Part shown: one piece after another, positions 19,021 to 51,727 of the stretch
How positions within the stretch are numbered: the stretch's first letter is position 1
Layout: every line of letters begins with the position of its first letter
DNA from: Selaginella moellendorffii
Taxonomy: Eukaryota; Plantae; Lycopodiophyta
Assembly (NCBI RefSeq): GCF_000143415.4
Contig: NW_003314343.1
Location: forward strand, 310,813 to 374,812
Length of the DNA stretch: 64,000 nucleotides
Direction: 5' to 3'
Made by a program: the position numbers and the translations under genes
The notes under the pieces: model-generated
The model's input: the letters and a program-made list of their open reading frames with translations, nothing else
Databases searched by the model: none
Told to the model about the DNA's origin: nothing

Positions 19021-19099
19021 CCAAGAACCCTAGTTTTTTTAAATTCTAGGGTTCTTCCTTCTTTAATGCAAGTGTATACTACAGATCATCTCCTGAAAG

Positions 19100-20287: not shown

Positions 20288-20377
20288 GAATCTAAAGCTC
20301 TTCTAAGGCGATCTTGAGTTTAAGCGGGAGGGGGCCGGTTGGAGAAGGTTTACCGTGAAGGTACTCTGCAATTGCTC

Positions 20378-21971
20378 TTAGCTACTATAGACGCTTCTTT
20401 CAAGCCGTGCTTTCGGAACAGCAATGAGCGGCTGCGTTTTGTGACAAACCAAGCCATAAGTCTCGTCCATGTTGATCTCAGCTGGATCTTGTCCCTTCGC
20501 CAATTTCCACTCGAATCCCTGAACCAGTGTAGCAATGCCAATCTGCAGCGTGTCAAATCCAAGTTTAGCTCCAGGGCACATTCGCCTTCCAGATCCAAAT
20601 GGCAGCAAGTTGTAATCTTGTCCGAACACGTCGATGTCGGCCTCTAGAAATCGCTCGGGCCGGTACTTCATTGGATCTTTCCAGTGTGCAGGATCGATGC
20701 CGAGCGAATGGAAGTTGACAAAGGCGCAGGTACCGTTAGGAATGGTGTAGCCACCAAGTTTTGAAGGACCTCCTTGGACTACCTTGGGAAGAGCCAGTGG
20801 TGCTAGCTGGTGCAGCCTCAATGTTTCTTTGGCGATTGCAGCGATGAATGGTAGCTGATCCAAGTCTGAATCTTCCACCAATCTGTTGCTTCCAACCACA
20901 GAATCTATATCTTTGCGGGCCTTTTCCATGACGGATGGGTGACGAAGGAGCTCTGTGATGGCCCATTCCAGTGAGAGTGCCGAAGTATCCACTGCACCAA
21001 GCAACATATCCTGAAACAAATTTGGATGACTTATATATTGTGTAAAGCAGGAAACCACTTACGAAGAGAAGGGAGAGCTTGGTAATATCTGAAACTTCTT
21101 CTTCAGTTGAATCCAGAGAAAGGAGGACGTCAATGAACGGAACAGGCTCATCTCTCCTATACTTTCGAGGGTTCCTTCTATGATCTTGCAGGACAGAAAG
21201 CAAGTAGTCGTTCACCTTAGCTATCAGCTGCTTGTACCGTTTCTCCAAGCGTTGAACGTCCAGCCATTTGATTGCTGGGATGAAATCACTGATGTTGAAT
21301 ACCCCTGACAATCTTAAGCTTTCTATAACTGCATCCGCAAAAGCGTCAAGTGCTGCTGTGTTCCTGGCATGCGCCCCGTAGAAACGCTCTCCGAAGAGCA
21401 TGTAAGTGATGATGTTCACGTTCAGGTTGTGGAACTTGTCTCTGAGCTTGATCGGTGTGCCTTCTGCAGACACAATCGAACGCGCTAGACTGCATTGTTC
21501 TTCCCTGCGGATCTTGTCGTAGACTTTGAGCCTGGTTGCCGAGAGCAGATGAGTGTTGACGATCTTCCTGTACAGTTTCAGCTGTGGAGTGTACTCCGCA
21601 TAAACAATCCCATTGAAATCATTGCCAAAATGCCTGCCAGCTATAGTAGGAACTTTAGAAGCAAACTCAAGGCCACGATACTTGTACAGCTCCTTTGCTG
21701 CTTCTTCAGAGCTCACAACTACGAACGGTACTGTACCAAATTTGAGATGCATAATGCCACCGTACTTTCTAGACAGCTCGTGAAGAGACACATGAGGAAG
21801 AGGGCCAATCAAGTGAAGACAACCAATCACAGGCAGGCTAAATGGTCCAGGGGGGAGATCGCTGGGCTTTCTGAAGAACCATCTTGAAGTGACAATCACA
21901 AGCAGCAATACAAGCAACAACGAGTAGCAGTTTTCTTGTAGGAAAGCTGGAATGCTGGACAGAAGCTCCAT
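20378..21971 (-). CDS. Cytochrome P450, CYP71 clan (A-type), copy 1; 2 exons, 513 aa
   Basis: Membrane anchor and PPGP hinge; phase-0 intron 21011-21062 before DMLLGAVDTS; KETLR, PERF and heme loop PFGSGRRMCPG. Confidence 0.95.
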
Positions 21972-22059
21972 TCTTTCTATTCTTTGCTGGAAGGAGCACC
22001 AAACAGAGCAGAGAGAGGTGCTGAGCTTAAGAAGGAAGAAATTCTCCTACCTTAGCAAA

Positions 22060-22218
22060 AGAAATAGCCGTCCTTGTGTGACATGTGTTCTTGTGTATTG
22101 TGTGAAATAGACGTTCTACTTACCTGGCTCCAGTGAGGAGAAATAGCCGGCCTTGTGTGACACGCGCTGGACAATGTTCTTGTATTGTGTGAAATAGACG
22201 TTCTACTTACCTGGCTCA
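22060..22218. repeat. Imperfect ~80-bp tandem duplication in the CYP copy-1 leader
   Basis: agaaatagccg...gtgtgaaatagacgttctacttacctggctc occurs twice here and once at ~39388-39465. Confidence 0.8.
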
Positions 22219-23129
22219 AAGTCGAAGCAAGCTGGACCGAGACAAAGAATCGAGAAAACGAGATTGTGTGACTTATACTGTGGGTTTTAATAGTGATAGT
22301 ATCGCTTGAAATAATTATTGACAAACTGGATCCTTGACTAATCCGTTGGATTGTGAAAGGAGCAAGAAGATCACGTTCTACTTTATTTGGCAAAACATCT
22401 AATCCCCATTATTCTATCCCTTTTAAAGGTATCATAAAATATTCCTTGTATACTTTTTATATACCTTATATAAATAACATAGTGATTAAGTTTCACTCTT
22501 TTTTTATCAAGTTGACAATATTAAAAACTGTAAAAAAAGTTCTATTAATTTCTCTTAGCTTAATTTAGCTTATTTATTGTATAGCTTTTCTTGTATATAG
22601 ATCTTCTAATTGAAATTAATATAATCCATCCATTTTTGTATATAAACAAAGATTTTTACCCCAATGAATATAACTATTCTTATATCCTAAACACTCATAG
22701 TTTCTAAAAATTCTTTAGAGAGTAAGGTTTTTTGGCAGTGGTTTGATCTAGTATTCAAGATTGTGTTTTTGTTTTTATAATTCCCTTGTTCTTTAAATTT
22801 AGATTGTTGTAATTTTTGCTAAGATCAAGGATTGTAGCTATCAATTTTGCTCTTTTTTTAATCTTCATTACATTCCTTCTTTTTTTTTATCATGCCACAT
22901 TGTTCTCAGAGTGTGATGTTTAAGGCTTTATTCATTATCTCAATCTGGCAACATTGTTTCTATTATTGTATCACACATTGATCAAGGTTTTGGTGTTATG
23001 AGGTGTGATTTTGTTACTGCTACTTCAATCCTCAATGTGCTTTAGTGGGACATAGTTACACAACTTTTACTATTTTTGATATTATGATATCTTTTGCTAA
23101 TATGAAGTGTGCTAATGTGAAGTAAATTT

Positions 23130-24870
23130 AAAGTTATATCATTGGGTGTTCTTGATGGTATATTTGGTATTAAATTTTGTTAGATGGTGAATCTTATATT
23201 TTCTAAATATAATGAGCTTGGTGGCTCATGTACTATAATACTGGTTTATCAGATGATAATTTACCATTGAATATCTTTGTGTTCTAATTTATGATTTATT
23301 CACTAATAATTATGTCTTTAAGATATCATTGTTTATGACTTTGATATTATCCATTTTTTGATCTTTCTATTTGGGCCAATATAAGTAGACTAACTTCAGC
23401 ACTTCATGGGCATGGTGAAATCTCTAGTTATGGGGTAGCTACTATCAACTAATCACATCATTAACCTCTCTTTCAATATTTTTTATTTCATTAAAAAGGC
23501 ATGACCATGTAAACAACTTTCATTGTTTGTTTATAATAGTCTATCTAACTTTACCAACTTGAAAGATAATCTATTAGGGTTCAAATATAGATGAAAAGGG
23601 CCTATGAACAAGAATGCACCCCCTTTTTCAATCGACTATTTGGGGTTAAGTGTCCTTAGGTTTAAATAGTACTAGGTTAGGTGACCTATTAAAAAGTCTA
23701 AATTCAAGAGGTTATATTAGGTATCAAAGTAATATGTTAAAAGAGTGGGGTTCTCGGGAGTGTTGTGGCTCTTAGCTTCCATTATTCACAAGGGTGTGAA
23801 TTTACAAGGAAGCGTGGTGGATTGTAGACAGCCAAAGGGAAGGGTCTTGAGATTAAAGGTCTCAAGATATTTGGGGTTAAGCGTATTAGGAGTTTACAAT
23901 TAAATAAAGAAGTTACTTTAACTCATTTAAATTGGTGCATTTCTCACAAAGTGTGGACACCATGAATTTTTTCTAGAATTGTTTCCTTGGCAATGATCTA
24001 GATTATAGTATGCATCGACGAAGACGTTGATCTTCTCTAAGAGGGGGAGAACGAATATGACTATGGGTATCAAAAGTTACATGTCACCTAGTCTTTTTGG
24101 ATATTCTTTTTTGTTGCCACAACAGCAGCAGGAGGTCAGTATTGCTAAACACTTGATCAATCTTCACTTAAGCTAGTTGAGAAGCTAATCATTATATATG
24201 CACTTAGAACAAAAAAACACTAAGGAAATCTTAAGTTGTTATTTAGTCAAGCATACTTGACATGGTGATGAGAAACTCATATTGTTGGATTACACTTACT
24301 AATGTTAGGAACTCTCATGATATTGAGTTTAATCCCTCAATATTTACTATATAATAGCTTATTGTATTTGCCAAACACCTTCGCTATCATGCCCCTTACT
24401 AAATACGAAATGGCGCTATTGTGAATTTGGACATGGGACCAACATCATTATATTCTAGAAAACCTTTATATGTCATAGAAATGCTAAATTAGTAAATCTA
24501 GACACTTTCCATAGATAGCAATGAGAAATTTCACACTTGTCTTAGAGATTAACTCTTTGTACTAAAGGTGACTAAAGGTGAAAGCCCAAAGTGTGCAATC
24601 CTCAAGTGGGGGTTATAAAAGGTTCTAAATATATTGTAAGGATAATAGGTAAGTTGGGCATGATTAACTAATTTGAGGCATAGTTCAACTCCCGCTTATG
24701 TACGTATCCTTGTTTTATATTTGGCTTGGGTCTAAGCCCAAGTTCCATACCATGCTATCTAGTGAAGTACTCATATCCCCGCATTAAATCACCAATATGT
24801 TAAAATAGCACTAGACTCTGTTTAGCTCTAATTTGTGTGTTAGATTTGGCATTAGGATGTTAGATGCTCT
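23130..24870 (+). mobile_element. Decayed gypsy 3' internal region with polypurine tract, followed by a family-2 LTR (continues 26574-26760 after the solo-LTR insertion)
   Basis: gaagacgttgatcttctctAAGAGGGGGAGAA at ~24020-24050 precedes a repeat also found at 32098-32930, 33130-33919 (inverted), 34350-35300 and 41150-41620. Confidence 0.6.
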
Positions 24871-26568
24871 TGTGAAACACAAAATCCCTAGGCCCCAAAG
24901 TGGAGCCGGAAGGGTGCCACATGGTAGTGGCTGAAGCGAAAGCCAAACGAGCATAACACGTTTGGACTAAAAGCTCAACCTTGAAAGGTCGAGAGTGGGA
25001 GTGGAACTCCCAACAAAGTGTTCAAGGAATGAGCACAAAGCAAGCAATAAACGAGGCTCTAAAAGGGGACCCAAAAGGACCAATACATGAACACATGGAA
25101 GTGTCCGAGATGGAGTCCGAGATGGATCAAGACGGAGTCCGAGATGGAGTCCGAGATGGACCGAGACGGAGTCTAAGATGGAGTCCGAGATGGAGTCTGA
25201 GATGGACCGAGACGGAGTCTAAGATGGAGTCCGAGATGGAGTCCGAGATGGACTGAGACGAAGTCCAAGATGGAGTCCGAGATGGACCCGAGATGGAGTC
25301 CGAGATGGAGTCCGAGACGAAGTCCAAGATGGAGTCCGAGATGGACCCGAGATGGAATCCGAGATGGAGTTTGAGAAGGACCTGAGATGGAGTCCGAGGT
25401 CGAGACCGAGACCAGGACTGAGACCGAGACCAAGACCGAGACCGAGACCGAGATCGGGACCGAGATCGAGACCGAGGCCAAGGCCGAGACTGAGCCCGAG
25501 CCCGAGTCCGAGTCCGAGTCCGAGTCCGAGTCCGGGTCTGAGTCCGAGTCTGAGTCCGAGTTCAAGTCTGAGAGGGTGAAAGCCCAAAGCGTTCATCTCC
25601 CAAACCCTAGGGGGTTTGGTGAGCTCCAAAAGTATAGTAAGGGGGAGGACTGCAGTGGAGCCAGTTTAGCCAGGAAAGGCCAGTTTGGCCCAGGAAGGCT
25701 GTACCCAGTGTTGGGTGATGAGCTGCCCAGTGGGAAGTCCAAGACTAAAGTGAACACAAACCGATAAGTGGGGTAGCTTGGTGAAGTGTTCAAAAGCCAG
25801 CTCTAGTTCCCCCGGGAGATCGACTAGCCGATGCTCCTAGTCCAAGTGTGGGTGGCACTACCTACTTGGATACTTGGTGTAGCTCAACGAAACCTCGCTC
25901 TAAGCCCATGGCTAGAGCACCCAAAGGCAGAAGGCAAGGAGAGTACCCACGAGGCTTGCGTAAGGCCATGGTGTTCCGAAATGTTGTCCCAAAGGCCCAG
26001 ACTATGGAAAGGAAGAGGAGTAGTCCTTTGGTGTAGTGACCAAGAATACAGTTGTGCGGTGAAGAAGTCCCAGAGGACCATGGGACTTAGTGGTCAGGCC
26101 TATGGGCCTTGATTCAGTGGCAGTGTTGGCAAACACGGCCAAGGACAGAGAGGGACTTGGTGGGGACCAGAAAGGAGATATTGGGGAAAGTTATTCCCTA
26201 TATCTGTGGGCATCCTAAGGATGCTAAGGAGTGGATTTGGGATGACCACTCATGGATAGATTGCCCAGTCTTGGAGAGACGGGATTGCAATGCAGGTGGT
26301 GTTGGACCACCGATGTGACCAAGGTGATTGGGCATGGCTTAGCGTAACGGGCTGGTATGTTGGTGGTGCTTTGGGGTGTCGGTCATGGGACCGGACACGT
26401 GGAGCACTTGGACCAAGTGTAAAGGTTGAGTGGCATGGATGCCATTCTCGAGGCTTGCAAGCCCCAAGTCCTGAGAAGGACTTATGGAGGTTGTGAATGA
26501 GACTCCTTCAAGTGGTCAAAGATGCAGTTAAGTGACTAAAGTAGAATGGAAAAAATTAGTCACTTACA
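24871..26568 (+). mobile_element. Solo LTR, family 1, copy A (1698 bp)
   Basis: TG...CA ends, perfect 5-bp TSD GCTCT (24866-24870 and 26569-26573), internal GAGATGGAGTCC/GAGTCC arrays. Confidence 0.92.
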
Positions 26569-26764
26569 GCTCTAGAACTATTTCCAACATCACTCTATGC
26601 TTTTATGCTCCTTGGGCTAAAAGCTTAGCATTCACTCCATGCTTTAGTTCCTTTACTTCTTGGTTGCAAGTTTGGGAGTTTAGCTCCATACCTTTATTTA
26701 GTGGCCCAAGGCTCTGAAACTTAGATTCCACCTTACTGTCTTTGGACATGTGGCATGTGGTATG

Positions 26765-28300
26765 TGTAAGTGATTAAATTTTCCATTTTACCTTAGTCAC
26801 TTAACCACACCTTTGACCACTTAGAGGAGTTTTGTTCACAACCTCCATAAGTCCTATTTCTAGCTTGGGATATGCTAACCTTATGAATGACATTTATGCC
26901 ATTTAGCCTTTGCACTTGGTCCAAATACTCCATGTGTCCAATCTCATGACCGACACCCAAAGGTACCACCAACATATCAGTTTATTATGCTAAAGCCATG
27001 CCCATTCACCATTGTCATATTAATAATCCAAGACCACTTGCATCATAGTCATGTCTCTCAAAGACTAGGCCATCTATCTATGAGTAATCATCCCTTGACC
27101 ACACCTTAGCACCTTAGGATGCCCAGTACACCCTTCCCCAATATCCCTTCTTGCATCCCCACTAAGTCCTTCTCTCATCCATAGCCGTGTTCACCAACAC
27201 TGCCACTGGGTCAAGGCCTAAAGGCCCAACCACTAAGTCCCATTGTCCTTTGGGACTTCCTCACCATGTGACTATATCCTTGATCACTACACCAAAGGAT
27301 TATTCCTCTTCTTTTCCATAGTCTAAGATTTTAGAATAACATTTCAAAACACTATAGCCCTACGCAAGCTTTGTGAGTATTCTCCCCACCTTTCACCTTT
27401 GGGTGCTCTAGCCATGGGGCTAGAGCGAGGTTCCACTGAGCCACACCAGGTATCTAAGTAAGTAGTGCCACTTACACATGGACTGAGAGCATTGACCTTT
27501 CAATATCTTGGAGGAACTAAAGCCAGCTCTTGAACAATTCACCAAGCTACCCCACTTGTCCGTCCGTAGTCACTTTAATCTTGGACTTCTCAGTGGATAT
27601 ATCATCACCCAAGACACAGGCATAACATCCCTGGGTCACATTGGCCTTTCTTAGTCAAATTGGTTCCACTAGAGTCCAACCCCCATGCTCTCTATACTAT
27701 ATTTTTGGAACCCTCTACAGCCACCCCTTGGGGGATGATCGCTTAGGGCTTTCACCCCATAGCTTGTATTAATATTCAAACTTGGACTCGGCAGACTCAG
27801 ACTCGGTCTCGGTCTTGGTCTCATTTTGAATTCCATCTGGGGTCCATCTTAGATTGCATCTCAAGTCTATTTCAGGTCCATCTTGAGTCCATCTTGGGTC
27901 CATCTCGAACTCCATCTCAGATCCATCTCAAACTCCATCTAAGGTCCATCTTAAGTTTATCTCGAGTTCCATCTCAAACTCTATCTTAGGTTCATCTTGT
28001 ACTCCATCTCAAGTCCATCTCAGGTCCATTTTGGACTCCATCTTAAGTCCATCTTGGACTCTATCTTGACACTTCCACATATCATATATTAGTCTTCTTA
28101 TATCCCTTTTTTAGATACTCACTTATTGCTCACTTTGTGTTTGTTCCTTGAGCACTTCGTTGATAGTTCCACTCCCACTTTCAACTTTTCAAGTCAGAGC
28201 TTTTAGTTTAATATGTTACATTTGTTTGGCTTTTGCTTTGGCCACTACTAAATGGCATTTTTTCAGCTCCACTTTGAGGCTCTAAAATTTGTGTTTCACA
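26765..28300 (-). mobile_element. LTR family 1, copy B (oldest; probable 3' LTR of a truncated element)
   Basis: Reverse-complement homolog of copy A with heavy C>T/G>A decay and no TSD. On the minus strand it is preceded by TGAGGAC...GGATGGTAGAGT, a PPT-like flank. Confidence 0.82.
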
Positions 28301-30121
28301 ACTCTACCATCCATAGACAAAGTTTGATGTCCTCATTGAACGATAAACCATTTTATATAACAACCCCATCCTAAATCACCATATTCATTTTTGGCACCAA
28401 ACTAATATTGGTCAATGGTTCAACATCGAAGGTTCACCATGCATTGCTCATCTTGTAAAGAGCATAGTCTCTCCCAACTTAGAGACTCATTAGACCATTT
28501 TTTATAGTTCTCCCTTTATTTGGTTTAGTTCTCGCTAAACCCAATAAAGACAATTTTTTCTATCTCAATTAAACTACTTTTTAGCTTCTATCAATATAAC
28601 TATCACACTTTGGAAATTTTAAGTTTGATTTCTCAAAGTCAATTTTTTGGGTGTCTTTAATACTTTATATTGCACATGTTGTGCAAACTCCATGTCCCCA
28701 TCCTAAAAAGTTCTTTACCTAAGGGAACCATTATCCTCTCTTTTATTTCATGCCACTTTAAATACTAAGTTCCATTTATTCATAGTTTGTGCTAAGGCTG
28801 TCCACAGCCTTATCATTGACTACAATCTAGTTCTTGGAGGATGTTTGAAGATCAAGAAAACAATGTATATAAGCTTAAATGGATTCTTGTTGATAAGAAA
28901 TTCAAGTACTTTGAAAATAACTTTGAAGATAAATTAAAGATTTTGAAGGGTAATATGAAGGTTGGCCATATCAATTTCAAATAGTAGTTAGTATGGTGCA
29001 CAATTCTTGATAGGAACTATTTACCTTTTATCTTTTCCCAACTTTTTCTCGTTTTTGGCTTTGCCTCTATAGATTTCTAGTGTTTCTTCTTCATCTATTG
29101 CACTTTTTTCTTCTAGTACATTGATCAATTCTAACTTTTATGATTCTTGTTCTTAGTCTAATGTTAAATTGAGTGCTCTTTGTCTCCCTCAAAATAATCT
29201 AGATTTTATTATTTATTTACTATCTCTTTATATTTACTGAATAAATTTAACTATCAAAGAATGCAAACAATATGCAAAACAACTTACTAAAGACAACTAA
29301 AAGAACACAAAGTATCACCAATTGATAAAAAAGTATATTTGCCACTACTGGCCACTACAAGAATCAAATTTCAACCGGATTTGAACTCAATATCTATTAT
29401 TCATATAGATGGGTATATGGGAATCTAAATTAAGTTTCTAAGTTAGCTTCAGTTATATCAAATTAGTTTTTAGATCCCTATAACAGTAAAGTTTTTTGAC
29501 GACTTTGTACTCAAAATGTTTAATACAAATTTATCTTTTCTTTTCTATTTCATACTTTATTAGAATTTTTATTGTCTTCCTTCTTCTTGATAATAAACTT
29601 CTAAGAGATTGAATATTTTGTTATCAAAGGCTTTTTTATATCCTCTTCTTCAGCAAATTATTCAATATGAATAGCAACTCACTAGTTTAAAGTTTTAGAC
29701 TGGTATGCCATTAAATTTTGAAAGCATGTGGTCTAAGTTTTGTGGCTTCTTTGACTAAGTTAAACTTTAAATTATTATATAGTTTACCCAATATTCCACT
29801 TTAACTTCTTGTGTAGGATCAATTGAATCCATGATAGACTTTTTTAAATTCCCCACCCTTTTTAAAAAGAGTGATCTTGTTCTTTAAGATTTCAATTTCT
29901 TTATTCAATGTTTCACTAGCATGTTCAACAATACTAATCAAGAGTATACCACCATTAATAAGTTATAACAATTTTTGCCAAAGCTCCAAATCTAGATTTG
30001 TTTATGTATTAGAGTTCCAAATGATTGCTATTGATATTTCATTAGACAATATAGATCTCAAAGAATATTTTTACCTTGGCTTTAATGACAAGATCAAAGA
30101 TCTCATGGTTTTTCATTTAAC

Positions 30122-31805
30122 TGTAAGCGACTAAATTTTCCATTCTACTTTAGTCACTTAACCACACCTCTGTCCACTTGGAGGAGTCTCATTCACAACC
30201 TCCATAAGTCCAATCCAGGACTTGGGACTTGCTAGCCCCGAGAATGGCATCCATGCCACTCAACATTTGCACTTGGTCCAAGTGCTCCACGTGTCCGATC
30301 CCATGACCGACACTCAAAGGTACCACCGACATAGCAGCCCGTTACGCTAAGGCCATGCCCAATCACCTTTGCCACACTGGTAGTCCAATACCACTTGCAT
30401 CACCGTCTTGGCTCTCCAAGACTAGGCAAACCATCCGTGAGTGGTCATCTCAGATCCACTCCTTAGCATCCTTAGGATGCCCACTGACAAGGGGAATAGC
30501 CTTCCCCAATATCCCTCTGTCAGTCCCCACTAAGTCCCTTTCTGCCCCTGGCCGTGTTTGCCAACACTGCCACTGGATCGAGACCCACAGACCCGACCAC
30601 TAAGTCCCACGGTCCTCTGGGACTTCCTCACCACACAACTGTGTCCTTGGTCACTACCCCAGAGGACTGCTCCTCTTCCTTTCCACAGTCTGGGCCTTTG
30701 GGACAACATTTCGGAACACCGTGGCCTTACGCGAGCCACCTGGGTACTCTCCTCGCCTTCTGCCCTTGGGTGCTCTAGCCATGGGCTTAGAGCGGGTTCC
30801 GTTGAGCCACACCAGGTATCCAAGTAGGTAGTGCCACCCACACTTGGACTGGGAGCATCGGCTAGTCGATCTCCCGGGGGAACTAGAGCCGGCTCTTGAA
30901 CACTTCACCAAGCTACCCCGCTTGTCGGTCCGTGTTCACTCTAGTCTTGGACTTCCCAGTGGGCAGCTCATCACCCAACACTGGGTCCGGCCTTCCTGGG
31001 CCAAACTGGCCTTTCCTGGCCAAACTGGCTCCACTGCAGTCCTCCCCCTACTATACTTTTGGAGCTCACCAAACCCCCCAGGGTCTGGGAGACGAACGCT
31101 TTGGGCTTTCACCCTCTCAGGCTCCGGACTCGGACTCGGACTCGGACTCGGACTCGGACTCGGACTCGAACTCGGACTCGGACTCGGGCTCGGGCTCGGT
31201 CTCAGCCTCGGCCTCGGTCTCGGTCTTGGTCCCGATCTCGGTCTCAGTCTCGGTCTCGGTCTCGGTCTCGGTCTCGACTTCGGACTCCATCTCGGACTCC
31301 ATCTCGGGTCCATCTCGGACTCCATCTCGGACTCCATTTCGGGTCCATCTCGGGTCCACCTCGGACTCCATCTCGGACTCCATCTCGGACTCCATCTCGG
31401 GTCCATCTCGGACTCCACTTCGGACTCCAACTCGGGTCCATCTCGGACTCCACTTCGGACTCCAACTCGGGTCCATCTCGGACTCCACTTCGGACTCCAA
31501 CTCGGGTCCATCTCGGACTCCAACTCGAGTCCATCTCGGACTCCACTTCGGACTCCAACTCGGGTCCATCTCGGACTCCACGTGTCATGTGTTGGCCCTT
31601 TTGGGTCCCTTTTTGGAGCCTTGCCTTTTGCTCGCTTCGTGCTCGTTCCTCGAGCACTTTGTTGGGAGTTCCACTCCCGCTCTTGACTTTTCAAGTCGGA
31701 GCTTTTGGTCCAAACGTGTTACGCTCATTTGGCTCTCGCTTCAGCCACTACCACGTGGCACCCTTTCCGGCTCCACTTTGGGGCCTAGGGATTTTGTGTC
31801 TCACA
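30122..31805 (-). mobile_element. Solo LTR, family 1, copy C (1684 bp, youngest)
   Basis: TG...CA ends, perfect 5-bp TSD TTAAC (30117-30121 and 31806-31810), CpG-rich intact tandem arrays at 31125-31580. Confidence 0.93.
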
Positions 31806-32097
31806 TTAACATCTTTCATGACTATCATTGATCTTGTTATTTATTGTGATAATTAATTGTAGGAATGATAATTAGAGTGTAGTTATTAAACCTTTATTCC
31901 TTATTTAATATCCTCAATGTTGGAATAAATAACATATGAGCAAGGTGCAAATTTAATAGTATATCAACAATGTATTTTTGATGTTGAATAATGATGTCAA
32001 ATTGAAAAACACTTGTATATATATCATGTAAACACAAACCACTTCTTGTAATATATATAGACCACTTCTAAGAGCAATATCCTCATCATCACACTAC

Positions 32098-33919
32098 TAT
32101 TATAAATGTAATTTTGGGTATCTAAAAATACTTGTTAGCCAGTCTTTACAGACACTCTTTTTTTACTGCCATGATGGCAAGAGGTCGATACTACTAGTTC
32201 CCTTTATTAGCTCCTTTTAAAGAAGTGTTAGTAAACTGGATTTAGCATCTATACTTGGGTAGATGAGCATAAGAAAGGAATTCTTAAGTATCTATTTAGC
32301 TAAGCATACTTGGCCTAGCTTGTTAGTTCTCTTTTGCTCTATCTTGCACTGGCTTGCAAGAACCATCACGTATTGAGTCTAGTTCCTCAATATCGCTATA
32401 TGATAGCTTATCATGTCTATTAAACACCCTTGATGTCATGCTTTATGTGTTGGTTCCATTCTGGATTTATATGTTATTTATAGTAAGTGTCTAGATCTAC
32501 CCACGAAGCATATCTATGGAATGTAGAGAGTGTCCTAAACCTTATGATGTTGTTCTTGCTCCCTAATTTGTGATCTATTTAATAAGTTTAACACTTGTCC
32601 CAGAAACTAACTCCTAATACTAAAAGAGGCTAGGGGTGAAAGGCCAAAGTGTGTGTTTCTTAAGAAGGGTGGGGGGGGGGGGAGGAAGGGAGAGGGGGGG
32701 TTCCAAATGTATAGTAAGAATAGTGGTTGGAATGCATATTCAACCACCTAAAATATTAGTTTGGCTTTTACTAGGCTATATTGCTCTTTGTCTACATCTA
32801 GTTTGGGTCTAAGCCCAAGCTTCACACTGCTCTAGTTGATGGAATATCCTCCTCCTTGCGTTAAACCACCGGTATGCCAAAATCGTGCCGGACACTATTT
32901 GACCCCATTTTATGTGTAAGTGGTGAGTATGGGGAGCTGGTGCTCATGAGATTGTACTGGACCCTTGTTTGATAGTGCAATGGATTTGGAGTTTGGCTCC
33001 AAACTCAAGTGCACTATATTTGGTCATGTGTGTTTTGACCAAATGTAGCACACTTGAATTTGAAGTTGAACTCCAAACCTGTTGCACTATGAAACAAGGG
33101 TCCGGTACAATCTCATGAGCACCAACTCCTTGTATCCAACACCTACATGCAAAACAGTGTCAAACAGTGTCTGGCATGATTTTGGCATATCAGTGGCATA
33201 ATGTGAAGAGGAGGGTACTCCATCGACTAGAGTAGTATAGAGCTTGGGCTTAAACTTAAACCAAATGCAGAACAAGGAGCGACACAGCCCAGTAGGAGTT
33301 AAACTAATGTCTTAAATGGTCAGACATACATTTCAACCACTATCCCTATTATACATTTAGAACCCCCCATATCCCCCCTTGAGGAACACATGCTTTAGGC
33401 TTTCACCCCAAGCCTCCCTTAGTACCAAGAGTTAGTCTCTGGGACAAGCATGAAACTTACTAAATATGGAATAGTGCTAGATCATGAATCAAGGAGCAAG
33501 AACAATACCATAGGGTTCAAGACACTCTCTACATTCTGTACATATGCCTCGTGGATGGATCTAGACACTTACCATAAATAGCATATAGATTCAGAATGGA
33601 ACCAACACATAAAATATGATATCAAGGGTGTTTAGTAGACATATAATGACATTAAAGGACTAAACTCAATATGCAAAGGTTCTTGCCAAGCAAGTGTAAG
33701 ACAAAGCAAAAGAAAACTAACAAGCCAAGCAAAGTATGCTTGGCTAAATAAACACTTAGGAATTCATTCTACAAATGCTAAATTTAATTTACTAACACTT
33801 GGACAAGAGGGGCTAATAATCAGTAGTACTGACCTTCTATTGTCATGGCAGTAAAGAAAGAGTGTTTATAAGGACTAGCCGACAAATATCTTTCGATATT
33901 TGAAGTCACATTTGCGACA
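32098..33919. mobile_element. 1.82-kb palindromic (fold-back) element made of two inverted family-2 LTR-like arms
   Basis: Arms 32098-33026 and 33036-33919 are reverse complements (~80% by eye) around a 9-nt loop. Flanks are ACTAC and ATTAC. Confidence 0.85.
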
Positions 33920-34349
33920 ATTACTTGTCAAGCTCGTACAATGGATGCAACACTTATCATTTTGGAAAATGAAAATGTTCAATTTAATTAAGGGGTGCTC
34001 AACTAAGTGAATCATCTCTTCTTCCTCATTTTGGCTTTATTTATATTTTTCAAGGATCTCTCATCATTACTCACTTTTAGTTCATTAAATTTAGTTTCAT
34101 TTTTTGCATTTTAAATGATAGTGGCATTAATATAAACTTTAGTGATTGGGAGTTTGTGCTTTCTCTTGGCATTCTCTTTCAGCTAGCATAACATCTAACT
34201 TATACTAAAGTGGTAGACAGTCAATAAATCTCCTTTAGGTTTATTATTCATGAGATTGATTTAGTGCACATTAGGATTTGTTATCTTCAATATTATTTTC
34301 ATTATGAAGATATTATTGCAAATGTGATTTAATGAGTCCTTTTGGATTT

Positions 34350-35300
34350 TTTTTTTTACTGCCATGATGGTAGGAAATTAGTATTATTGATTCCCTTTGA
34401 TAGTCCTTTTGTTACTAAATTAACTTTAATATCTATATTTGGCTGGATAAGCATAAAAAGGAATTCCTAAATGTCTACATCCTTAGCTCAGTTTGTTAAA
34501 TTTCTTTTCACTCTATCTTGCACTAACTTATTAAAAACCTTCATATGTTGAGCATTAGTCCCTCTGTATAATAGCTTTGCTATCATGCCCCATATGTTGA
34601 TCTTTATTTATGAAAAATGTCTAGATTTGTGAGTGAGATATATCTATGGAATACAAAAATTGTTTTGAACATGATAGTGTTATTCTCAAGTCCAGATTCA
34701 CAATCTAACTCTATCTCATATTTAGTAAGTTTTCATGATTGTCCTAGAGATTTAACTTCTAAGACACCAAAAGTGTGCTTTCATATATAAGGTGGTGGGG
34801 CTTTAAATGTTTAATAGAGATAGTGGTTGAGATATTATCTTTTATAACCAACTTGGGTCTACATCTAGTTTAGGTTCAAGCCAAAGCTCCATATAATGTT
34901 AGTTGGTGAAGTACTTATATTTTCAACCAGTATGCTAAAATAATGCTAAATTTTATTTGGCTCCATTTTGCATATTAGTTTTGGCATTAGAATATTGGAT
35001 GTTCTAGAATTATTCAAATGTCACTCCATGCTCCCACTCTTTTACTTCTTGGTTATACACTTAAGAGTTGTGTTATGCTCCAATTCCTTCATTCTTTAGT
35101 TATATATTTAGGAGTTTGGTTACGTCTTTCCATCCCAAGGTTCTAAAATTCAAGTTTTGCTCAATTCCCTTTGGACAAATATTCACTATCTCATTTCTTG
35201 AAACATAAGTTTTTAGAGGTTGAATCTTCATCCAACTTTAGAGATTCTATACTTTTTTTATCCTAAGCTCCTCCTCACACTTTATCTATGGTCTTTTTGT
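34350..35300 (+). mobile_element. Decayed copy of the family-2 LTR-like repeat
   Basis: ttttactgccatgatgg...gtctagat...gttggtgaagtact is collinear with 32160-32920 and 24100-24870. Confidence 0.7.
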
Positions 35301-36299
35301 GTATTAATGAAAAGTGTAAAACAGTTAGAAAAAGTTTAAAATAGTAAGCTGAAATATTTAAAAAGTATAAGAGAGATTTCACACCCACTATTAAACTAGT
35401 AAATTTAATAGTAATTTGTTCACACCACCACACTATTATATTAGATTTTGTAAACTCTAATTTAATAGCTGAATTAATGGTAACTTGTTCACACCAGAAA
35501 TTAACATTAAATTAGCTTCGTGGTAAATTAGCATTCTCTTTTTATTTTTCCTTACTTTTCTAGCATTAAAACTAAAATATTCAAGAATATTCGTTAGGGT
35601 GATTAGCTAGGGTAAGGCATGGTATCCTTGTTGCAGCAGCATGACTGGGGAGTGCTGCCAATCAATTGTTGAGCTATTGAACTATGAGAATGTTGCCAAT
35701 CAATCAATTGTTGCTGCTACTTGAGCTATGAGGGATTTAGGGTGTTTGCAATCAATTAATTGCGCTCAATCGTTGGAACACATTGTTGCCTGCCAGGGTT
35801 GTAAGGGCACTCCTAATATTACTGGACCTGTGAGGGATTTGTCACAATTCAATGAGCACCAAAGGTAAAAGATGAGGATAGATGAGGATTTGAACAAAGT
35901 GTGATTAAATAAGTTAATTTAAATGCTTATATGAACAGAATTTCATGACCTAACTATTTTTTAACAAAATTGACTAAATGTTGATGTGAACAGAATAACA
36001 TTAAAATTTTGAATTAAGTTTACCAGGAGCGAGACAAAGAAGAGGAAGAATCTCCCCAGTCAGAGCACTTGTACTTCAATAGCAGTGATCCACTCACCAC
36101 GAGAAGCAATGGCGAGGCGCAGCAGTGGAAGCTCAGCACGATCAAGCACGCCCTAGACGAAGGCTGCCACTTCTTCCACCTCGCATTTGATACTAATGAG
36201 GTTTTTAAATTCTAGGGTTCTTCCTTCTTTAATGCAAGTGTATACTACAGCGTTGCAAAACATGGTAACTTGTTTTGAAAGACGAATCGTATCAATCTT

Positions 36300-37665
36300 T
36301 TGATCGAGGGTCGAGAAAAAAAAAACCTTTGATATCTTGCAAGACGATTGAGTTACCTTTGCTGGAACGCAAGTGAAAGGGTTTCTTCTTCTTCTAAACT
36401 TTTAAAACTCTTTTCTCCTGTGATTCCTAGGCTGCAACTCTTGTAGATAATCAGCTCATCATTGCAAAGCTTTCCAACATCAGCAGAAAGAAAAGAGGCA
36501 TGGAACTTGGCAGTGCTAGTGACAATGGCAACTCTAGCAGCAGTGAAGAAATGAGCGACAAAGCTCCCAAGCTTGAGGTCAGCAACTTGTAGGCAAGATC
36601 TTCAGCCAGGTCCACATGATAGCTCATGAGGGATCATCAATCGCATTTGTGCCAACAAGAACCAGAAACTGAAGTTGTCGAGATATGAAGCTTCTTGCCA
36701 TGGTTTACACTGCTCTCATACTTTCACTGGGTTTGGGACTTCCTAGCCTCTTGCTAGAACTTCCGTGCTTTTTCTCGGGTTACAAACAAGGTACCCTTCC
36801 AAGTTGTTTCTCATGGGGTGGAAGGATTTGCTCTGGATTGGAGTTCGGTGCACCACAGATAGCTCGTGTCGTGCTTTGAACTGATTGATTGAACTTTTTC
36901 TTTTGCTAAGCCATGCTTTTCTTTCATCCAGGCAAGTGAATAATCTTTCTTTGTTGCTTTTACATAAACTTGATGATCAGTGGTGTCTGAGGGTGGATTT
37001 CTTTGAGCTTGCGGCTTGCTTCTCCAATGGAATAGTCAGTCTGTGGGAGTTTCCACTGGTACTTGCAAAACGGTGGTTAAAGTCCATGACACAGATGCTA
37101 ACGTGATCTCTTGGAACAGGTATACAGTTCTCAAAAACAAACACTTCACTGTCAAGTTCCCCAAAGTCCCAGTTTCAAACGGCAGCTTGCCACTGGTGGT
37201 GACGATGCCATCCATGTATGGCATCTAGACTCTCTCTTGCGCTTAAATTCCATACTTCCTCGATATCTAAATTTCGCAGGACTGCTTACCATTCTGCCTC
37301 AATAACTTCCATCGAATGGTCTTCTGATGAAAGTTCCACGGTTGACCACCAGTTAAAGTATGAATTTGTAGCGTGTGTCTCTTTTCTCTGTTTAGCTCAC
37401 ATTCTATCGTTGTTATGAGCAGTGTGTGGGATTTGAAAGCTTTCCCACATCAAGAAGCACAAGTGAAACAATTTCCTCAAGGCTTGCCTGAAAGCTTGGT
37501 AAAAGTTTTTAGATCGATTTTTTAATATTCCAAAGAGAAGTAAATCTATCTCTTTTCTTCAGGGACAAAGCGACTTAAGAGAAGTTCACTGGCATCCATA
37601 GCTACTGGAAACAATCGTTTCAACATCTCCCAGCAATTTCAACGTTTTCAAGCCTTCCAATTTCC
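36300..37665 (+). pseudogene. GRWD1/Rrb1-like WD40 pseudogene, copy 2
   Basis: FDILQDD, AHEG..NRI, VHDTDANVISWNR, YHSASITSIEWS and QGQSDLREVHWHP* fragments. Retains segments deleted from copy 1. Confidence 0.8.
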
Positions 37666-37727
37666 AAGGCGATCTTGAGTTTAAGCAGGAGGGGGAGGTT
37701 TACCGTGAAGGTACTCTGCGATTGCTC

Positions 37728-39321
37728 TTAGCTACTATAGACGCTTCTTTCAAGCCGTGCTTTTGGAACAGCAATGAGCGGCTGCGTTTTGTGACAAACC
37801 AAGCCATAAGTCTCGTCCATGTTGATCTCAGTTGGATCTTGTCCCTTCGCCAACTTCCACTCGAATCCCTGAACCAGTGTAGCAATGCCAATCTGCAGCG
37901 TGTCAAATCCAAGTTTAGCTCCAGGGCACATTCGCCTTCCAGATCCGAAAGGCAGCAAGTTGTAATCTTGTCCGAACACGTCGATGTCGGCCTCTAGAAA
38001 TCGCTCGGGCCGGTACTTCATTGGATCTTTCCAGTGTGCAGGATCGATGCCGAGCGAATGGAAGTTGACAAAGGCGCAGGTACCGTTAGGAATGGTGTAG
38101 CCACCAAGTTTTGAAGGACCTCCTCGGACTACCTTGGGAAGCGCCAGTGGTGCTAGCTGGTGCAGCCTCAATGTTTCTTTGGCGATTGCAGCGATGAATG
38201 GTAGCTGATCCAAGTCTGAATCTTCCACCAATCTGTTGCTTCCAACCACAGAATCTATATCTTTGCGGGCCTTTTCCATGACGGCTGGGTGACGAAGGAG
38301 CTCTGTGATGGCCCATTCCAGTGAGAGTGCTGAAGTATCCACTGCACCAAGCAACATATCCTGAAACAAATTTGGATGACTTATATATTGTGTAAAGCAG
38401 GAAACCACTTACGAAGAGAAGGGAGAGCTTGGTAATATCTGAAACTTCTTCTTCAGTTGAATCCAGAGAAAGGAGGATGTCAATGAACGGAACAGGCTCA
38501 TCTCTCCTATACTTTCGAGGGTTCCTTCTATGATCTTGCAGGACAGAAAGCAAGTAGTCGTTCACCTTAGCTATCAGCTGCTTGTACCGTTTCTCCAAGC
38601 GTTGAACGTCCAGCCATTTGATTGCTGGGATGAAATCACTGATGTTGAATACCCCTGACAATCTTAAGCTTTCTATAACTGCATCCGCAAAAGCGTCAAG
38701 TGCTGCTGTATTCCTGGCATGCGCCCCGTAGAAACGCTCTCCGAAGAGCATGTAAGTGATGATGTTCACGTTCAGGTTGTGGAACTTGTCTCTGAGCTTG
38801 ATCGGTGTGCCTTCTGCAGACACAATCGAACGCGCTAGACTGCATTGTTCTTCCCTGCGGATCTTGTCGTAGACTTTGAGCCTGGTTGCCGAGAGCAGAT
38901 GAGTGTTGACGATCTTCCTGTACAGTTTCAGCTGTGGAGTGTACTCCGCATAAACAATCCCATTGAAATCATTGCCAAAATGCCTGCCAGCTATAGTAGG
39001 AACTTTAGAAGCAAACTCAAGGCCACGATACTTGTACAGCTCCTTTGCTGCTTCTTCAGAGCTCACAACTACGAACGGTACTGTACCAAATTTGAGATGC
39101 ATAATGCCACCGTACTTTCTAGACAGCTCGTGAAGAGACACATGAGGAAGAGGGCCAATCAAGTGAAGACAACCAATCACAGGCAGGCTAAATGGTCCAG
39201 GGGGGAGATCGCTGGGCTTTCTGAAGAACCATCTTGAAGTGACAATCACAAGCAGCAATACAAGCAACAACGAGTAGCAGTTTTCTTGTAGGAAAGCTGG
39301 AATGCTGGACAGAAGCTCCAT
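37728..39321 (-). CDS. Cytochrome P450, CYP71 clan, copy 2; 2 exons, 513 aa
   Basis: Same structure as copy 1 at offset +17350, intron 38361-38412, four amino-acid differences seen. Confidence 0.95.
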
Positions 39322-41695
39322 TCTTTCTATTCTTTGCTCCAAAAAGAGCAGAGGAACAAGGAAGAAATTCTCCTACCTTAGCACGAAAGAAATAGCCGGC
39401 CTTGTGTCACATACGCTGGACAATGTTCTTGTGTATTGTGTGAAATATCTACTTACCTGGCTCCAGTAAAGTCGTACAAGCAAGCTGGACCGAGACAAGG
39501 AAACGAGAAAACGAGATTTTGTCATAGTGATTATATCGCTTGTAATAATTATTGACAAACTTGGTCCTCAATCTAAGAAAAAACTACAACAAATCTAATT
39601 AATGAACAAGGGAATCATAAAAACGAAAACAACAATCTTGAACTCTAAGGAATCTATAAAACCCCTTACTTCCAGAAATTGTGAGTGTTTAGATTACTGG
39701 GGTTTGTTTATATACAAAAATGGATGGATTATATTTAATCCTAATTAGATGGTCTATATATAATACTTAAATGCTATGTAATAAGTATGCTAAATTAATC
39801 TAAGAGGAAATTAATAATAATTTATTTTTCTTACAGTTTTGAATATTGTAGAAAAACATTAACTATGTCTTTATTTATGCTTTATTTATATATTTATATA
39901 ATGTATAAGAAGTATATTCTCTTTTTTTAAATACAAGGAATATTTTATGATACCTCTCAAAGGGAGAATGAAACAAATAATTTCCCTTGTGCATTAAGCC
40001 AACCCTGCAAACAGGTAATTGCAAATTGGATTTGCTATCAAATTTGTTCTTTTTTTAATTTTCATTGTGTTCCTTTTTTTTTGTTTATCATGCCACACTC
40101 TTCTCAATGTTGTTCAAGGCCTTAGGCAACATTGTTTCTACTATTGTATCACACATTAATCAAGGTTTTGGTGTTATGAGGTGTTATTTTGTTAATTTTA
40201 TTTAAGTCTTTAGTGTGTTGATGTCTCTAGCTTTAGTGGGACATAATTACACAGCTTTTACTATTTTTGGTATTATAATATCTTTTGCTAATGTGAAGTG
40301 AATGCTTCTTGGAAGATGTTTGAAAATCAAGAAGATGATGTTTATGAGCTTAAGTGGATTCTTGTTAATAAAAAATTCAATTACTTTGAAAATAACTTTA
40401 AAAATAAATTCAATATTTTGAAGGGTATGTGTCAATCATTTAGTTTTTCTTTTTGCCTTCTACATTTTCCCAACCTTTTCTTGTTTTTTTGGCTTTGCCT
40501 CTTCAAATTTCTATTATTTCTTCCTCATCTATTGCACTTTTTCTCCTAGCACATTGATCAATTCTGACACTTATAATTCATGTTCTTAGTTTAGTGTTAG
40601 GTTGAGTGCTCTTTGTCCTCCTTAAAGTAATTTAGATTTTGTCATATATTTACCATTTCTTTATATTTACTGAATAATATTTTTAGCACTACTGGCCACT
40701 ACAAAAATTGAACTTCATTAGATTTGAATTCGATATCTACTATTCATATAGATGGGCATTTGGGGCTAATACTTAGATTACGCTTATGGATTAGCTTAGG
40801 TTACATCAAATTAGATTTTAGATCTCTTTTAAAGTAGGGTTTTGAGGACTTTATACTCAATACAAATTCATCTTATCTTCTTTATTAATATTTAAATAGT
40901 AATTTTTTTTGTCTTTCTTATTCTCAACAATGAACTTTTAAAAGATTGAATATTTTGATATCAAAGGCTTCTTCATATCCTCTTCTTCAACTTCAATTAT
41001 ATCAGAAGTCTAATTAAATATTAAAGTAATCCAATATGACATTTCACTTGCAGCACTAGCAAATTATTCAATACCAATAACAACATGGCTGACCAATTTA
41101 GGATATTTTCTAACTCCTTTCTTAGCATGTTTGTCTTTATTTTGTGTCTGGTTTAGCCCAAGGTACATATAATGTTAGTTGGTGGAGTACTTATATTTTC
41201 AATTGATATGCTAAAATAACATTAAACTCTGTTCAGCTCTATTTTGCATGGTAATTTTGACATTAGGATGTTAAATGTTTTAAGACTATTTTAATGTCAT
41301 TCCATGCTTTTTTACTCTTTAGTTATATACTTAAGAGTTATATCATTAATTCATCACTCTTTAATTATATACTTAAGAATTTAATTATGTTTCTCCATCC
41401 TAAGGCTCTAAAATTTAAGTTTTGCTCCATTGTATTTGGGCCACGTGTTCAAGAGTTAAGATTCTACTTCATAATTATCTTATGGTAAAACACTAATAAG
41501 GTAAAGGTACACTACAAATACTCACTATCTCATTTCTTGAAACACAACTCTTTTAAAGGTTTTTAGAGGTTGGATCTTCATCCAGCTTTAGAGATCTTAT
41601 ACTTTTTTTATCTTGAGCTCCAAGTGTAAAACAGTTTAAGCCCCTAAACCTTAAAAAGCATAAAGCTAACAAGATCATTGCTTTAGGGTTTTACT

Positions 41696-44260
41696 ATGGG
41701 CGCCAATGCTGCCGCTTTCGCGTCTCTACTGCGCGGCGCCACCAATCTCTCGCAATGCCGCTGGATCCTGGAGCAGCTGATCAACAGCAGGTATGCTGGT
41801 GACATCTTCCTGGGGAATTTGGCGCTCCAGATGTTTGGGAAGCTGCACGGCATCGGCGACGCCAGGGCTTTGTTCCACCGGATGGCACAGACCGGGCGAA
41901 ATCTCTTCTCCTGGTCGATCATGATCTCGGCACTGTGTCGCGACGGGCATCACCGCGAGGCCCTGGGGTGTTACCACGCGATGAATCTGGAAGGGGGCAT
42001 TGAGGCTGATATGGTGATCTTGTCCACCGTCATTGGCGTTTGCTCCGCGCTCCAGAATCTCTGCGAGGGACGCAAGCTCCACGATCGCGTCGCTGGCTGT
42101 GGCCTGGAATCCGACACGGTCGTCCACAACGCTTTGGTGAGCATGTATGTGAAGTGTGGCTGCTTGGACGATGCTCGAGCGGTCTTCGACGCTACTCCGA
42201 CGCGAGAGAAGGATGCCGTCTCTTGGAACGTGATGATGGCTGCGTACTCCTCGCGAGGTAAGTTCCAGCAAGCTCTAGAGATTTTCAATGACTGTCTACT
42301 CCACTCCGTCCAGGGACCCGATGCCGTGAGCTTTGTCACCGCCATCTCGGCCTGCTGTGGATTAAAAGACGTGAAGCAGGCTAGAGCTCTGGAGGAGCTC
42401 AGTTGTTCGCATGGATTTTTGGAGACCAGCGTTGCGGTCCAGAACTCTCTCATCAACCTCTATGGAAAATGCGCGAGCTTGAGCGAGGCCAGGTTGGTTT
42501 TTGACAGGATTGCTTCCAAGACTGCTGTGAGCTGGAACTCTATAATGGCAGCTTACGGCCAACATGGAAATAGCTCGGAAGTCTTAAGCTTGTTCCGGAG
42601 GATGGACTTGGAGGGCATCGAGCTGAGCAAGGCGACTTATGTCGCAGTTGTCAGTTCGTGCTGCAGTAATGGAGGTGATGCTGAGACGAGAAGAGAAATT
42701 TTGTCACAGGTTTGTTATCGCATTCATGCTGCCTTCTATTCTGATGTGGTGCTTGGGACTTGTCTTCTAGATGCACACGCCAAATGCGGGAGTTTGGAAG
42801 GGGCTCGCGCTATCTTCGACTTCATGCCTGAAAAGAATGCGCGGACATGGAATTCGATGATCGGTGCTTGCATCCAGCACGGACACAGCGACGAAGCCAT
42901 GCAAACGTTCTACGAGATGCAGCTCGAAGGCATCCACGTCACTGACGTGACAGTCATCGTTGTTCTAGGAGCCTGCACATCCGATCAGCACCTCGACTTG
43001 GGCAACAGGATTCAGAAGCTAGTTTCTGAAGGAAACCATGCCCAGCCAGCGACTGCTCTTCAGAACTCTCTCGTCAACATGTACGCCAAGTGTGGGTGCC
43101 TTGAAGCCGCAAAGAAGAACTTTGACGAGATGGAACAGGATACGCGAAGTGTGGTCTCCTGGAACGCAATGATCTCGGCCTACATTCAAAACTCGCGGGA
43201 TGTAGAGGCCTTGGAATTGTACAAGCAAATGTGCCAGGCAGCAGAGCCAGATTCCTTCACATTCTCAAGCGTCCTCACCGCCTGCTCCAACTTGAATGCT
43301 CTAGAGGAGGGGAAGTTGGTCCACCATCAGGTTGAAGCCACTGGAATGGAACTGGATGGTGTGCTCGGGAGTGCACTCATCACCATGTATGGCAAGTGCG
43401 AAGACTCCGGCAGTGCTCGCCTGGTTTTTGAGACACTGGTGGAAGAGCAGAGGACGAGCATGGACGTCGTGTGCTGGAACGCGATGATCTCGGCTTACTC
43501 CCAGTGCGGCTGCAGCAGCGAAGCTTTCGAGCTCTTCTACAAGATGGACCTGGAAGGCATCAAACAAGTCAGTGCGAGCTTCGTCAGCATCCTCGCAGCG
43601 TGCGACAGTTTCGACAAAGGGATGGCACTCGAGTTACGGCTGGCTAGTGCTGGACTGGATACGAGCCAGGAGATTGGAGCCGCACTGATCAACATGCACA
43701 GCAGGTGTGGAAACTTGGACCGAGCGAGACGCGTGTTCGACAGCATGGTGCGCATCAACGACGTAAGAGCATTGCGGAATCCAATCTGCTGGACGGCCAT
43801 GCTTGCGGCCTACTCCCACCATGGCTGCGCTCGCCAGAGCCTGGAGCTCCTCTTCCTCATGAGCCTCGAAGGCGTCCAGCCCAACGAGATCAACTTCACC
43901 AGCATTCTCAACGCGTGTAGCCATGCAGGCCTCAGCAGCCAGGCGTGGACGAGCTTTCTAGACATGCACACCAAGTATGGCGTAGCTCCCGCTGCTCAGC
44001 ACCTGGTTTGCTTGAGCGACATGCTGGGGAGAGCCGGGATGCTGGGTGAAGCGGAGGCGTTCATCGGGACCTCGACTTACGATGACACTAGTACCGAGGC
44101 CGAGTTCGCTGCTGTGGCATGGAAGTCACTGCTCAATGCTTGCAAACTCCAGGGGAATGCCGGAGCTGGAGCTCGTGTAGCGGAGAAGCTGGCCGAGCTG
44201 GAGCCCGAGGTGGCGGCTCCTTACATCCTCCTGGCCGGTATCTACGCAGCTCAGACGTGA
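41696..44260 (+). CDS. PLS-class pentatricopeptide repeat protein with E-type C-terminus (no DYW domain)
   Basis: Intronless 854-aa ORF with repeated NALVSMYxKCGxLxxAxxVFD and VSWNAMIxAY motifs; ends AWKSLLNAC...APYILLAGIYA. Confidence 0.93.
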   Translation: MGANAAAFASLLRGATNLSQCRWILEQLINSRYAGDIFLGNLALQMFGKLHGIGDARALFHRMAQTGRNLFSWSIMISALCRDGHHREALGCYHAMNLEGGIEADMVILSTVIGVCSALQNLCEGRKLHDRVAGCGLESDTVVHNALVSMYVKCGCLDDARAVFDATPTREKDAVSWNVMMAAYSSRGKFQQALEIFNDCLLHSVQGPDAVSFVTAISACCGLKDVKQARALEELSCSHGFLETSVAVQNSLINLYGKCASLSEARLVFDRIASKTAVSWNSIMAAYGQHGNSSEVLSLFRRMDLEGIELSKATYVAVVSSCCSNGGDAETRREILSQVCYRIHAAFYSDVVLGTCLLDAHAKCGSLEGARAIFDFMPEKNARTWNSMIGACIQHGHSDEAMQTFYEMQLEGIHVTDVTVIVVLGACTSDQHLDLGNRIQKLVSEGNHAQPATALQNSLVNMYAKCGCLEAAKKNFDEMEQDTRSVVSWNAMISAYIQNSRDVEALELYKQMCQAAEPDSFTFSSVLTACSNLNALEEGKLVHHQVEATGMELDGVLGSALITMYGKCEDSGSARLVFETLVEEQRTSMDVVCWNAMISAYSQCGCSSEAFELFYKMDLEGIKQVSASFVSILAACDSFDKGMALELRLASAGLDTSQEIGAALINMHSRCGNLDRARRVFDSMVRINDVRALRNPICWTAMLAAYSHHGCARQSLELLFLMSLEGVQPNEINFTSILNACSHAGLSSQAWTSFLDMHTKYGVAPAAQHLVCLSDMLGRAGMLGEAEAFIGTSTYDDTSTEAEFAAVAWKSLLNACKLQGNAGAGARVAEKLAELEPEVAAPYILLAGIYAAQT

Positions 44261-51480: not shown

Positions 51481-51727
51481 AGTGTCGATTCATTTCACGT
51501 TCTCCAGTACCTTGAGAGGAAGAGAAATGTGAGCGCTATGGCGCGGATCTCTCAATCAACTCGCCATAGCCAAGAGTGCGCCCTGCGAAACGAACGGTTG
51601 AGATGTCGTTGGACCAATCTAATCGCCTGATTTGAAAAAGAGCTAGGGTTTAAGTTAGGGCATGCAATGGCGACGGCATTCACGGCAATGGAGGTAGGCC
51701 TCGTGTAGACTGTCATTGATCGGAGAA

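Follow-up and report, generated by a model that had tools for sequence, protein, structure and literature searches.

Does the large fold-back structure that lies in a transposon-rich stretch of the Selaginella moellendorffii genome represent two LTR ends that entered the chromosome together, as one preformed palindrome, or was it assembled in place from resident copies? The window analysed here is the whole stretch of 64,000 nt from contig NW_003314343.1 (positions 310,813–374,812, forward strand), and all coordinates given below are window-based. Its gene content comprises a PPR gene (41696–44260), two cytochrome P450 paralogues, a WD40 gene and an ABC-2 transporter fragment. The fold-back sits within a transposon nest, between the two units of an old tandem duplication. 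This segmental duplication (18840–23109 and 36023–40300, extending to ~35330 and ~41650) carries the two cytochrome P450 paralogues. The two units are 92.6% identical in the gene region and 77–88% identical in their non-coding parts, where the transversion distance is 4.5%. Unit 1 is about 11.6 kb longer than unit 2, owing to transposon insertions at 23127–28830 and 29662–34837.

The initial annotation had described an inverted repeat at 32098–33919, and comparison of the sequence with itself bore this out, giving two arms in opposite orientation around a loop of only 9 nt (Table 1). The complete structure is 1822 nt long and thus forms a hairpin-shaped insert of about 1.8 kb. In a global alignment, the arms share 873 columns with 78.8% identity (73% when gaps are counted) and differ by seven indel events. 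When the 1822 nt were folded as RNA, the predicted free energy was -1023.5 kcal/mol, compared with about -433 kcal/mol for shuffled sequences, and 747 of the 758 predicted pairs joined the left arm to the right arm. No tandem arrays were detected inside 32098–33919 with Tandem Repeats Finder.

Table 1. Coordinates of the fold-back, of the related LTR copies and of the tandem units in the window. Strand is given as + or -; a dot marks features read without strand.
Feature	Position	Strand	Remarks
Left target-site duplication (candidate), ACTAC	32093–32097	.	direct reading
Left arm	32098–33026	+	initial ~930 bp of a family-A LTR, with U3 at the outer end; alignment, terminal motif, homology to the 24-kb and 34-kb copies
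Loop, tgtgtgttt	33027–33035	+	9 nt, between TGGTCA and TGACCA
Right arm	33036–33919	-	same LTR portion inverted, terminus TGTCGCAAATG on the minus strand; alignment, terminal motif
Right target-site duplication (candidate), ATTAC	33920–33924	.	direct reading
Polypurine tract AAGAGGGGGAGAA	24039–24051	+	directly upstream of a single family-A copy
24-kb copy, single family-A copy, 5' part	24050–24870	+	resumes at 26569–26764, then from 28301 on, once nested B1 and B2 are removed
34-kb copy, single family-A copy	34314–35330	+	same terminal motif; extends past the turning point of the fold-back
41-kb copy, unit-2 paralogue of the 34-kb copy, 3' part only	41084–41650	+	lacks the 5' 520 bp and all preceding sequence as far back as the equivalent of 29662
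B1, solo LTR of family B	24871–26568	+	ends TGTGAAAC...CTTACA (TGT..ACA); perfect GCTCT at 24866–24870 and 26569–26573
B2, LTR of family B, inverted	26765–28300	-	195 bp from B1; no recognisable duplication; nested in the 24-kb copy
B3, solo LTR of family B	30122–31805	-	ends TGT..ACA; perfect TTAAC at 30117–30121 and 31806–31810
Tandem unit 1	18840 to ~35330		
Tandem unit 2	36023 to ~41650		

The outer ends and flanks had been given as TATTATAAATG on the left, TGTCGCAAATG on the minus strand on the right, and ACTAC and ATTAC on either side; direct reading confirmed all four. The window was searched for the terminal motif TRTYRYAAATGTRAYTT with up to two mismatches allowed, which returned four matches where 0.5 were expected by chance. 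Mismatch-free matches were found only at 32098 (+), 33919 (-) and 34314 (+), that is, at both outer ends of the fold-back and at the start of the 34-kb copy, so that the motif marks a true element terminus. A 5' TG (TGT...) terminus is common to these separate copies: it is intact in TGTCGCAAATG and decayed by transitions in TATTATAAATG at 32098, where TG has become TA, and in TATTGCAAATG at 34314. Both arms of the fold-back therefore stop exactly at the family terminus, as set independently by the 34-kb copy.

The flanks ACTAC and ATTAC are separated by a single C/T transition and share four of five bases. At control positions with the spacing of the fold-back, 5-mers that match exactly or with one transition occur in 0.65–0.72% of cases. 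The repeat is 5 bp long and does not extend to a sixth base; the perfect duplications that flank the related solo LTRs of family B in the window are equally long. What speaks against its being the trace of a single integration is that the duplication is imperfect (4/5) and is seen in one instance only.

These termini bear directly on the possibility that the palindrome arose in place, by breakage or stalling at about position 1000 of a resident family-A LTR followed by fold-back repair or by template switching at a replication fork. Fold-back repair typically yields palindromes with short loops, the region is prone to rearrangement (it holds a tandem segmental duplication, with large indels between the units), and four family-A copies are clustered here. 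Such repair should, however, run on into the left flank, whereas here the inverted copy breaks off precisely at the end of the LTR; moreover, the left flank does not reappear as its reverse complement on the right, and the matching 5-mers would have to be a coincidence (0.7%). An origin in place thus appears unlikely. The presence of four family-A copies within 11 kb could in itself hint at local rearrangement, but the three family-B copies of the same stretch include two that are provably independent insertions. Unit 2 was considered as an empty site and rejected: the whole segment 29662–34837 is missing from it, including the 5' 520 bp of the 34-kb copy, which indicates a deletion and not a pre-insertion state.

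The reading of the arms as the 5' part of an LTR was upheld by three lines of evidence: the TG start, the polypurine tract in front of the 24-kb copy, and homology to a demonstrable LTR family, here called B. As had been noted before, a single arm-type copy begins at about 24050, right after the polypurine tract. Once the nested elements B1 and B2 are removed, this copy is colinear with the unit-2 paralogue. Families A and B have a conserved block in common (blastn E values 3e-9 and 3e-8), and the motif GGTGAAAGSCYAAAGYRTG from this block has six matches in the window, every one in a copy of A or B, where 0.27 were expected. A search of a metagenome collection with an 18-mer shared by A and B returned 44 loci, none of which was similar beyond the seed. 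On the strength of its terminus, the polypurine tract and the homology to family B, we accept family A as an LTR. It measures at least 1.5 kb in the 24-kb and 34-kb copies; its 3' end was not found in the decayed local copies. No primer-binding site of the iMet type was found near any family-A copy, and neither a paired LTR nor an internal coding region was found in the window. Remnants of gag or pol were likewise absent from the ORFs and stop-free pieces examined at 23.3–24.0 kb, 24.9–26.1 kb (+) and 28.3–34.1 kb, and Pfam detected no retroelement domain in such pieces around the A and B copies and in the flanks.

Judged from its ends and flanking duplications, family B is a genuine LTR, and B1 and B3 are solo LTRs. 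B1 is nested in the 24-kb copy, and the corresponding undisturbed site is visible in the 34-kb copy. The family is represented by three copies of about 1.7 kb, each with an internal minisatellite built from 12-bp GTCCGAGATGGA units and 6-bp GAGACC units. Lying tail to tail, B1 and B2 mimic a second fold-back with arms of 1.6 kb and 78% identity. This candidate was rejected, as B1 has a duplication of its own, 195 bp of host-element sequence lie between the two, and the pair is more diverged; B1 and B2 are separate nested insertions.

The position of the turning point was then defined from the family copies. According to the initial annotation, the inner ~100 bp of each arm were absent from the other local copies. 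This proved wrong: the inner ~86–90 bp of both arms match 26645–26752, in the portion of the 24-kb copy on the far side of the solo LTR B1, with scores that were reached by 0 of 500 and 3 of 500 shuffled sequences. The first bases of the loop carry on the family sequence in the orientation of the left arm (TTTGGTCATGTG, compared with TTTGGACATGTG at ~26741–26752), and the two arms end at family positions no more than 9 nt apart. Family A continues for at least 500 bp past this point in the 24-kb, 34-kb and 41-kb copies, and the arms therefore represent the first ~930–1000 bp of an LTR of at least 1.5 kb that has been cut symmetrically.

The relationship between the arms was evaluated from transversions. 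The arms differ from each other by 2.1–2.4% transversions, compared with 6–12% between the arms and the other local family-A copies in pairwise comparisons and at least 10% in a multiple alignment. In the shared tail, the distance from the arms to the 34-kb copy exceeds that between the 34-kb copy and its unit-2 paralogue. The arms are thus sisters that derive from one common template, and they were not copied from the neighbouring 34-kb copy.

The symmetric cut and the sister relationship are difficult to reconcile with two independent family-A insertions in opposite orientation followed by a deletion between them. Inverted, independent LTR insertions do occur in this nest, as illustrated by B1 and B2, which stand tail to tail 195 bp apart with a duplication belonging to B1 alone. 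However, with an element length of at least 1.5 kb, the chance that both cuts fall within 9 nt of the same position is about 1%. The transversion values just given also show the arms to be far closer to each other than to the other copies, and the outer flanks match as one duplication. We regard this scenario as very improbable.

The arms differ at 188 of the 873 aligned sites, by 167 transitions and 21 transversions. The transitions are evenly spread over both arms and both strands. The fraction of differing sites, calculated by taking the C or G state as original, decreases from CG (0.79) through CHG (0.60) to CHH (0.31). This order fits deamination of methylated cytosines and points away from a repeat-specific process. 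Several indels could be polarised against the other local copies, among them deletions of 20 bp (right arm) and 13 bp (left arm), which shows that the arms decayed independently. An assembly artefact, in the form of a chimeric palindromic read or clone, would have produced identical arms, whereas here 188 of 873 sites and seven indels separate them, which excludes such an origin.

The transversion distance between the arms is about half of that between the non-coding parts of the two units, indicating that the fold-back is younger than the unit duplication. This agrees with its absence from unit 2.

Decay of the same kind is seen in the transposon copies across 22000–36000, which differ almost only by C-to-T and G-to-A changes, with transition:transversion ratios of 4–8, and grade into sequence of ~30% GC. 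The ratio of 8:1 in the fold-back is higher than in the non-coding pairs of the units (Fisher p 0.0005–0.025). The idea that the fold-back had been methylated beyond its surroundings, as a sign of hairpin activity, was dropped because this ratio is not significantly above that of B1 versus B3 (p 0.11). A BLAST comparison of sequences recoded as purines and pyrimidines was discarded as well, since BLAST statistics do not hold when only two letters are used, and the output was full of spurious matches.

Together, the sister arms, the symmetric fold, the exact termini and the ACTAC/ATTAC repeat argue for a single integration of a preformed palindrome. The proposal that the two arms were integrated as one unit therefore stands as the best-supported reading of the locus. 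As to how the palindrome was formed, we favour, with a probability of roughly 0.6, a plus-strand cDNA that snapped back on itself and became double-stranded with U3 at both ends, followed by a single integration. In this scenario, the polypurine tract of a family-A LTR retrotransposon would have primed synthesis of the plus strand. After about 1 kb of the long LTR had been copied, the growing strand would have folded back and copied itself as far as the U3 terminus. Synthesis of the second strand by displacement would then have produced a blunt palindromic duplex of 1.8 kb that has the U3 terminus (TG...) at either end. The snap-back and the second-strand step are of a kind that cannot be observed in sequence, and for the final step we infer that the integrase of the element joined both ends in one concerted reaction, generating the 5-bp target duplication (ACTAC). 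Lacking a primer-binding site, a polypurine tract and genes, the insert would have been incapable of further transposition, and it has since decayed in place, mainly through deamination of methylated cytosines and independently in each arm.

A palindrome of this shape could alternatively belong to a mobile, non-autonomous fold-back family with arms made of LTR ends, mobilised either by an integrase of the retro type or by a 5-bp-duplicating DDE transposase. The TG..CA-type ends, the long inverted arms, the tiny loop and the 5-bp flanking repeat are all features that such a family would display. Only one fold-back copy is present in the window, however, and the other 3.5 local copies occur singly and extend beyond the turning point, which means that the palindrome is not the normal form of family A. 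Without a primer-binding site and a polypurine tract, a palindrome could also not be reverse-transcribed in the normal way. Foldback DNA transposons, such as FB of Drosophila and FARE of Arabidopsis, have arms composed of tandem sub-repeats and create duplications of roughly 9 bp. The present structure shares long inverted arms, a very short loop and a target duplication with these transposons and with MITE-like elements having long terminal inverted repeats. It differs from FB and FARE in that its arms are free of tandem repeats, which also counts against a mobile family, are homologous to an LTR family and are flanked by a duplication of 5 bp. Membership of a mobile fold-back family is accordingly improbable.

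DIRS-type retroelements also carry inverted terminal repeats, but they encode a tyrosine recombinase, contain an internal complementary region and insert without duplicating the target. The inverted repeats apart, the fold-back departs from this type, as it has no internal region and is flanked by a 5-bp duplication.

A literature search for published palindromic LTR insertions with two U3 ends gave no direct match. A parallel to the favoured reading, snap-back of a cDNA followed by one integration, is provided by cereal complexes with three LTRs, whose flanking duplication was read as the mark of a single integration that followed aberrant template switching (Sabot & Schulman 2007, PMC1950507). 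In both situations a non-canonical structure with several LTRs is bordered by a single 5-bp target duplication, and an error of reverse transcription combined with a normal integrase would account for it. The cereal cases are direct tandems of three LTRs with two complete internal domains, whereas the fold-back consists of two inverted partial LTRs, has no internal domain and presents a U3 end on both sides.

In terms of possible activity, the structure recalls the maize locus Mu killer, in which the 5' part of a transposon is naturally duplicated in inverted orientation and which uses small RNAs to silence its family (Slotkin et al. 2005, as presented in PMC2725412). According to that account, Mu killer is likewise an inverted partial copy of a transposable element, from which a read-through transcript would form a long hairpin; it arose through rearrangement of a DNA transposon, and genetic work demonstrated its activity. 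The fold-back, by contrast, is LTR-derived, was apparently integrated as a unit and has decayed by ~21%. A role in silencing by hairpin RNA may be envisaged on the basis of the predicted fold.

If the single integration is true, the locus would provide natural evidence that a retrotransposon integrase can insert DNA with two identical U3 ends, and that snap-back products of reverse transcriptase can reach the chromosome. Inserts of this type would be ready-made LTR inverted repeats, a structure able to trigger RNA-based silencing of a family, as with Mu killer and Mutator. One could go further and suppose that two-U3 snap-back LTR cDNAs are integrated appreciably often in the lycophyte genome, forming a recurrent class that seeds hairpin-RNA loci and thereby starts the silencing of its own family; we consider this extension doubtful. 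The suggestion of an undescribed system was too strong: the fold-back is an old, heavily mutated single relic, a curiosity and no new system. Its value is that of a documented example, one dead and decayed copy, and not of a new mechanism.

Some further observations concern the remainder of the window. Rfam and tRNA scans across its whole length found nothing. The stretch 51716–53617 displays a strong strand asymmetry (GC skew 0.27, AT skew 0.41) with long ORFs overlapping on both strands, and contains diverged internal repeats at 52098–52766; its 633-aa ORF had no Pfam match. Finally, a decayed 3' part of a family-A LTR (41084–41695) lies directly 5' of the start of the PPR gene at 41696. As LTR-derived sequence abuts the start of this gene, its promoter region is LTR-derived.
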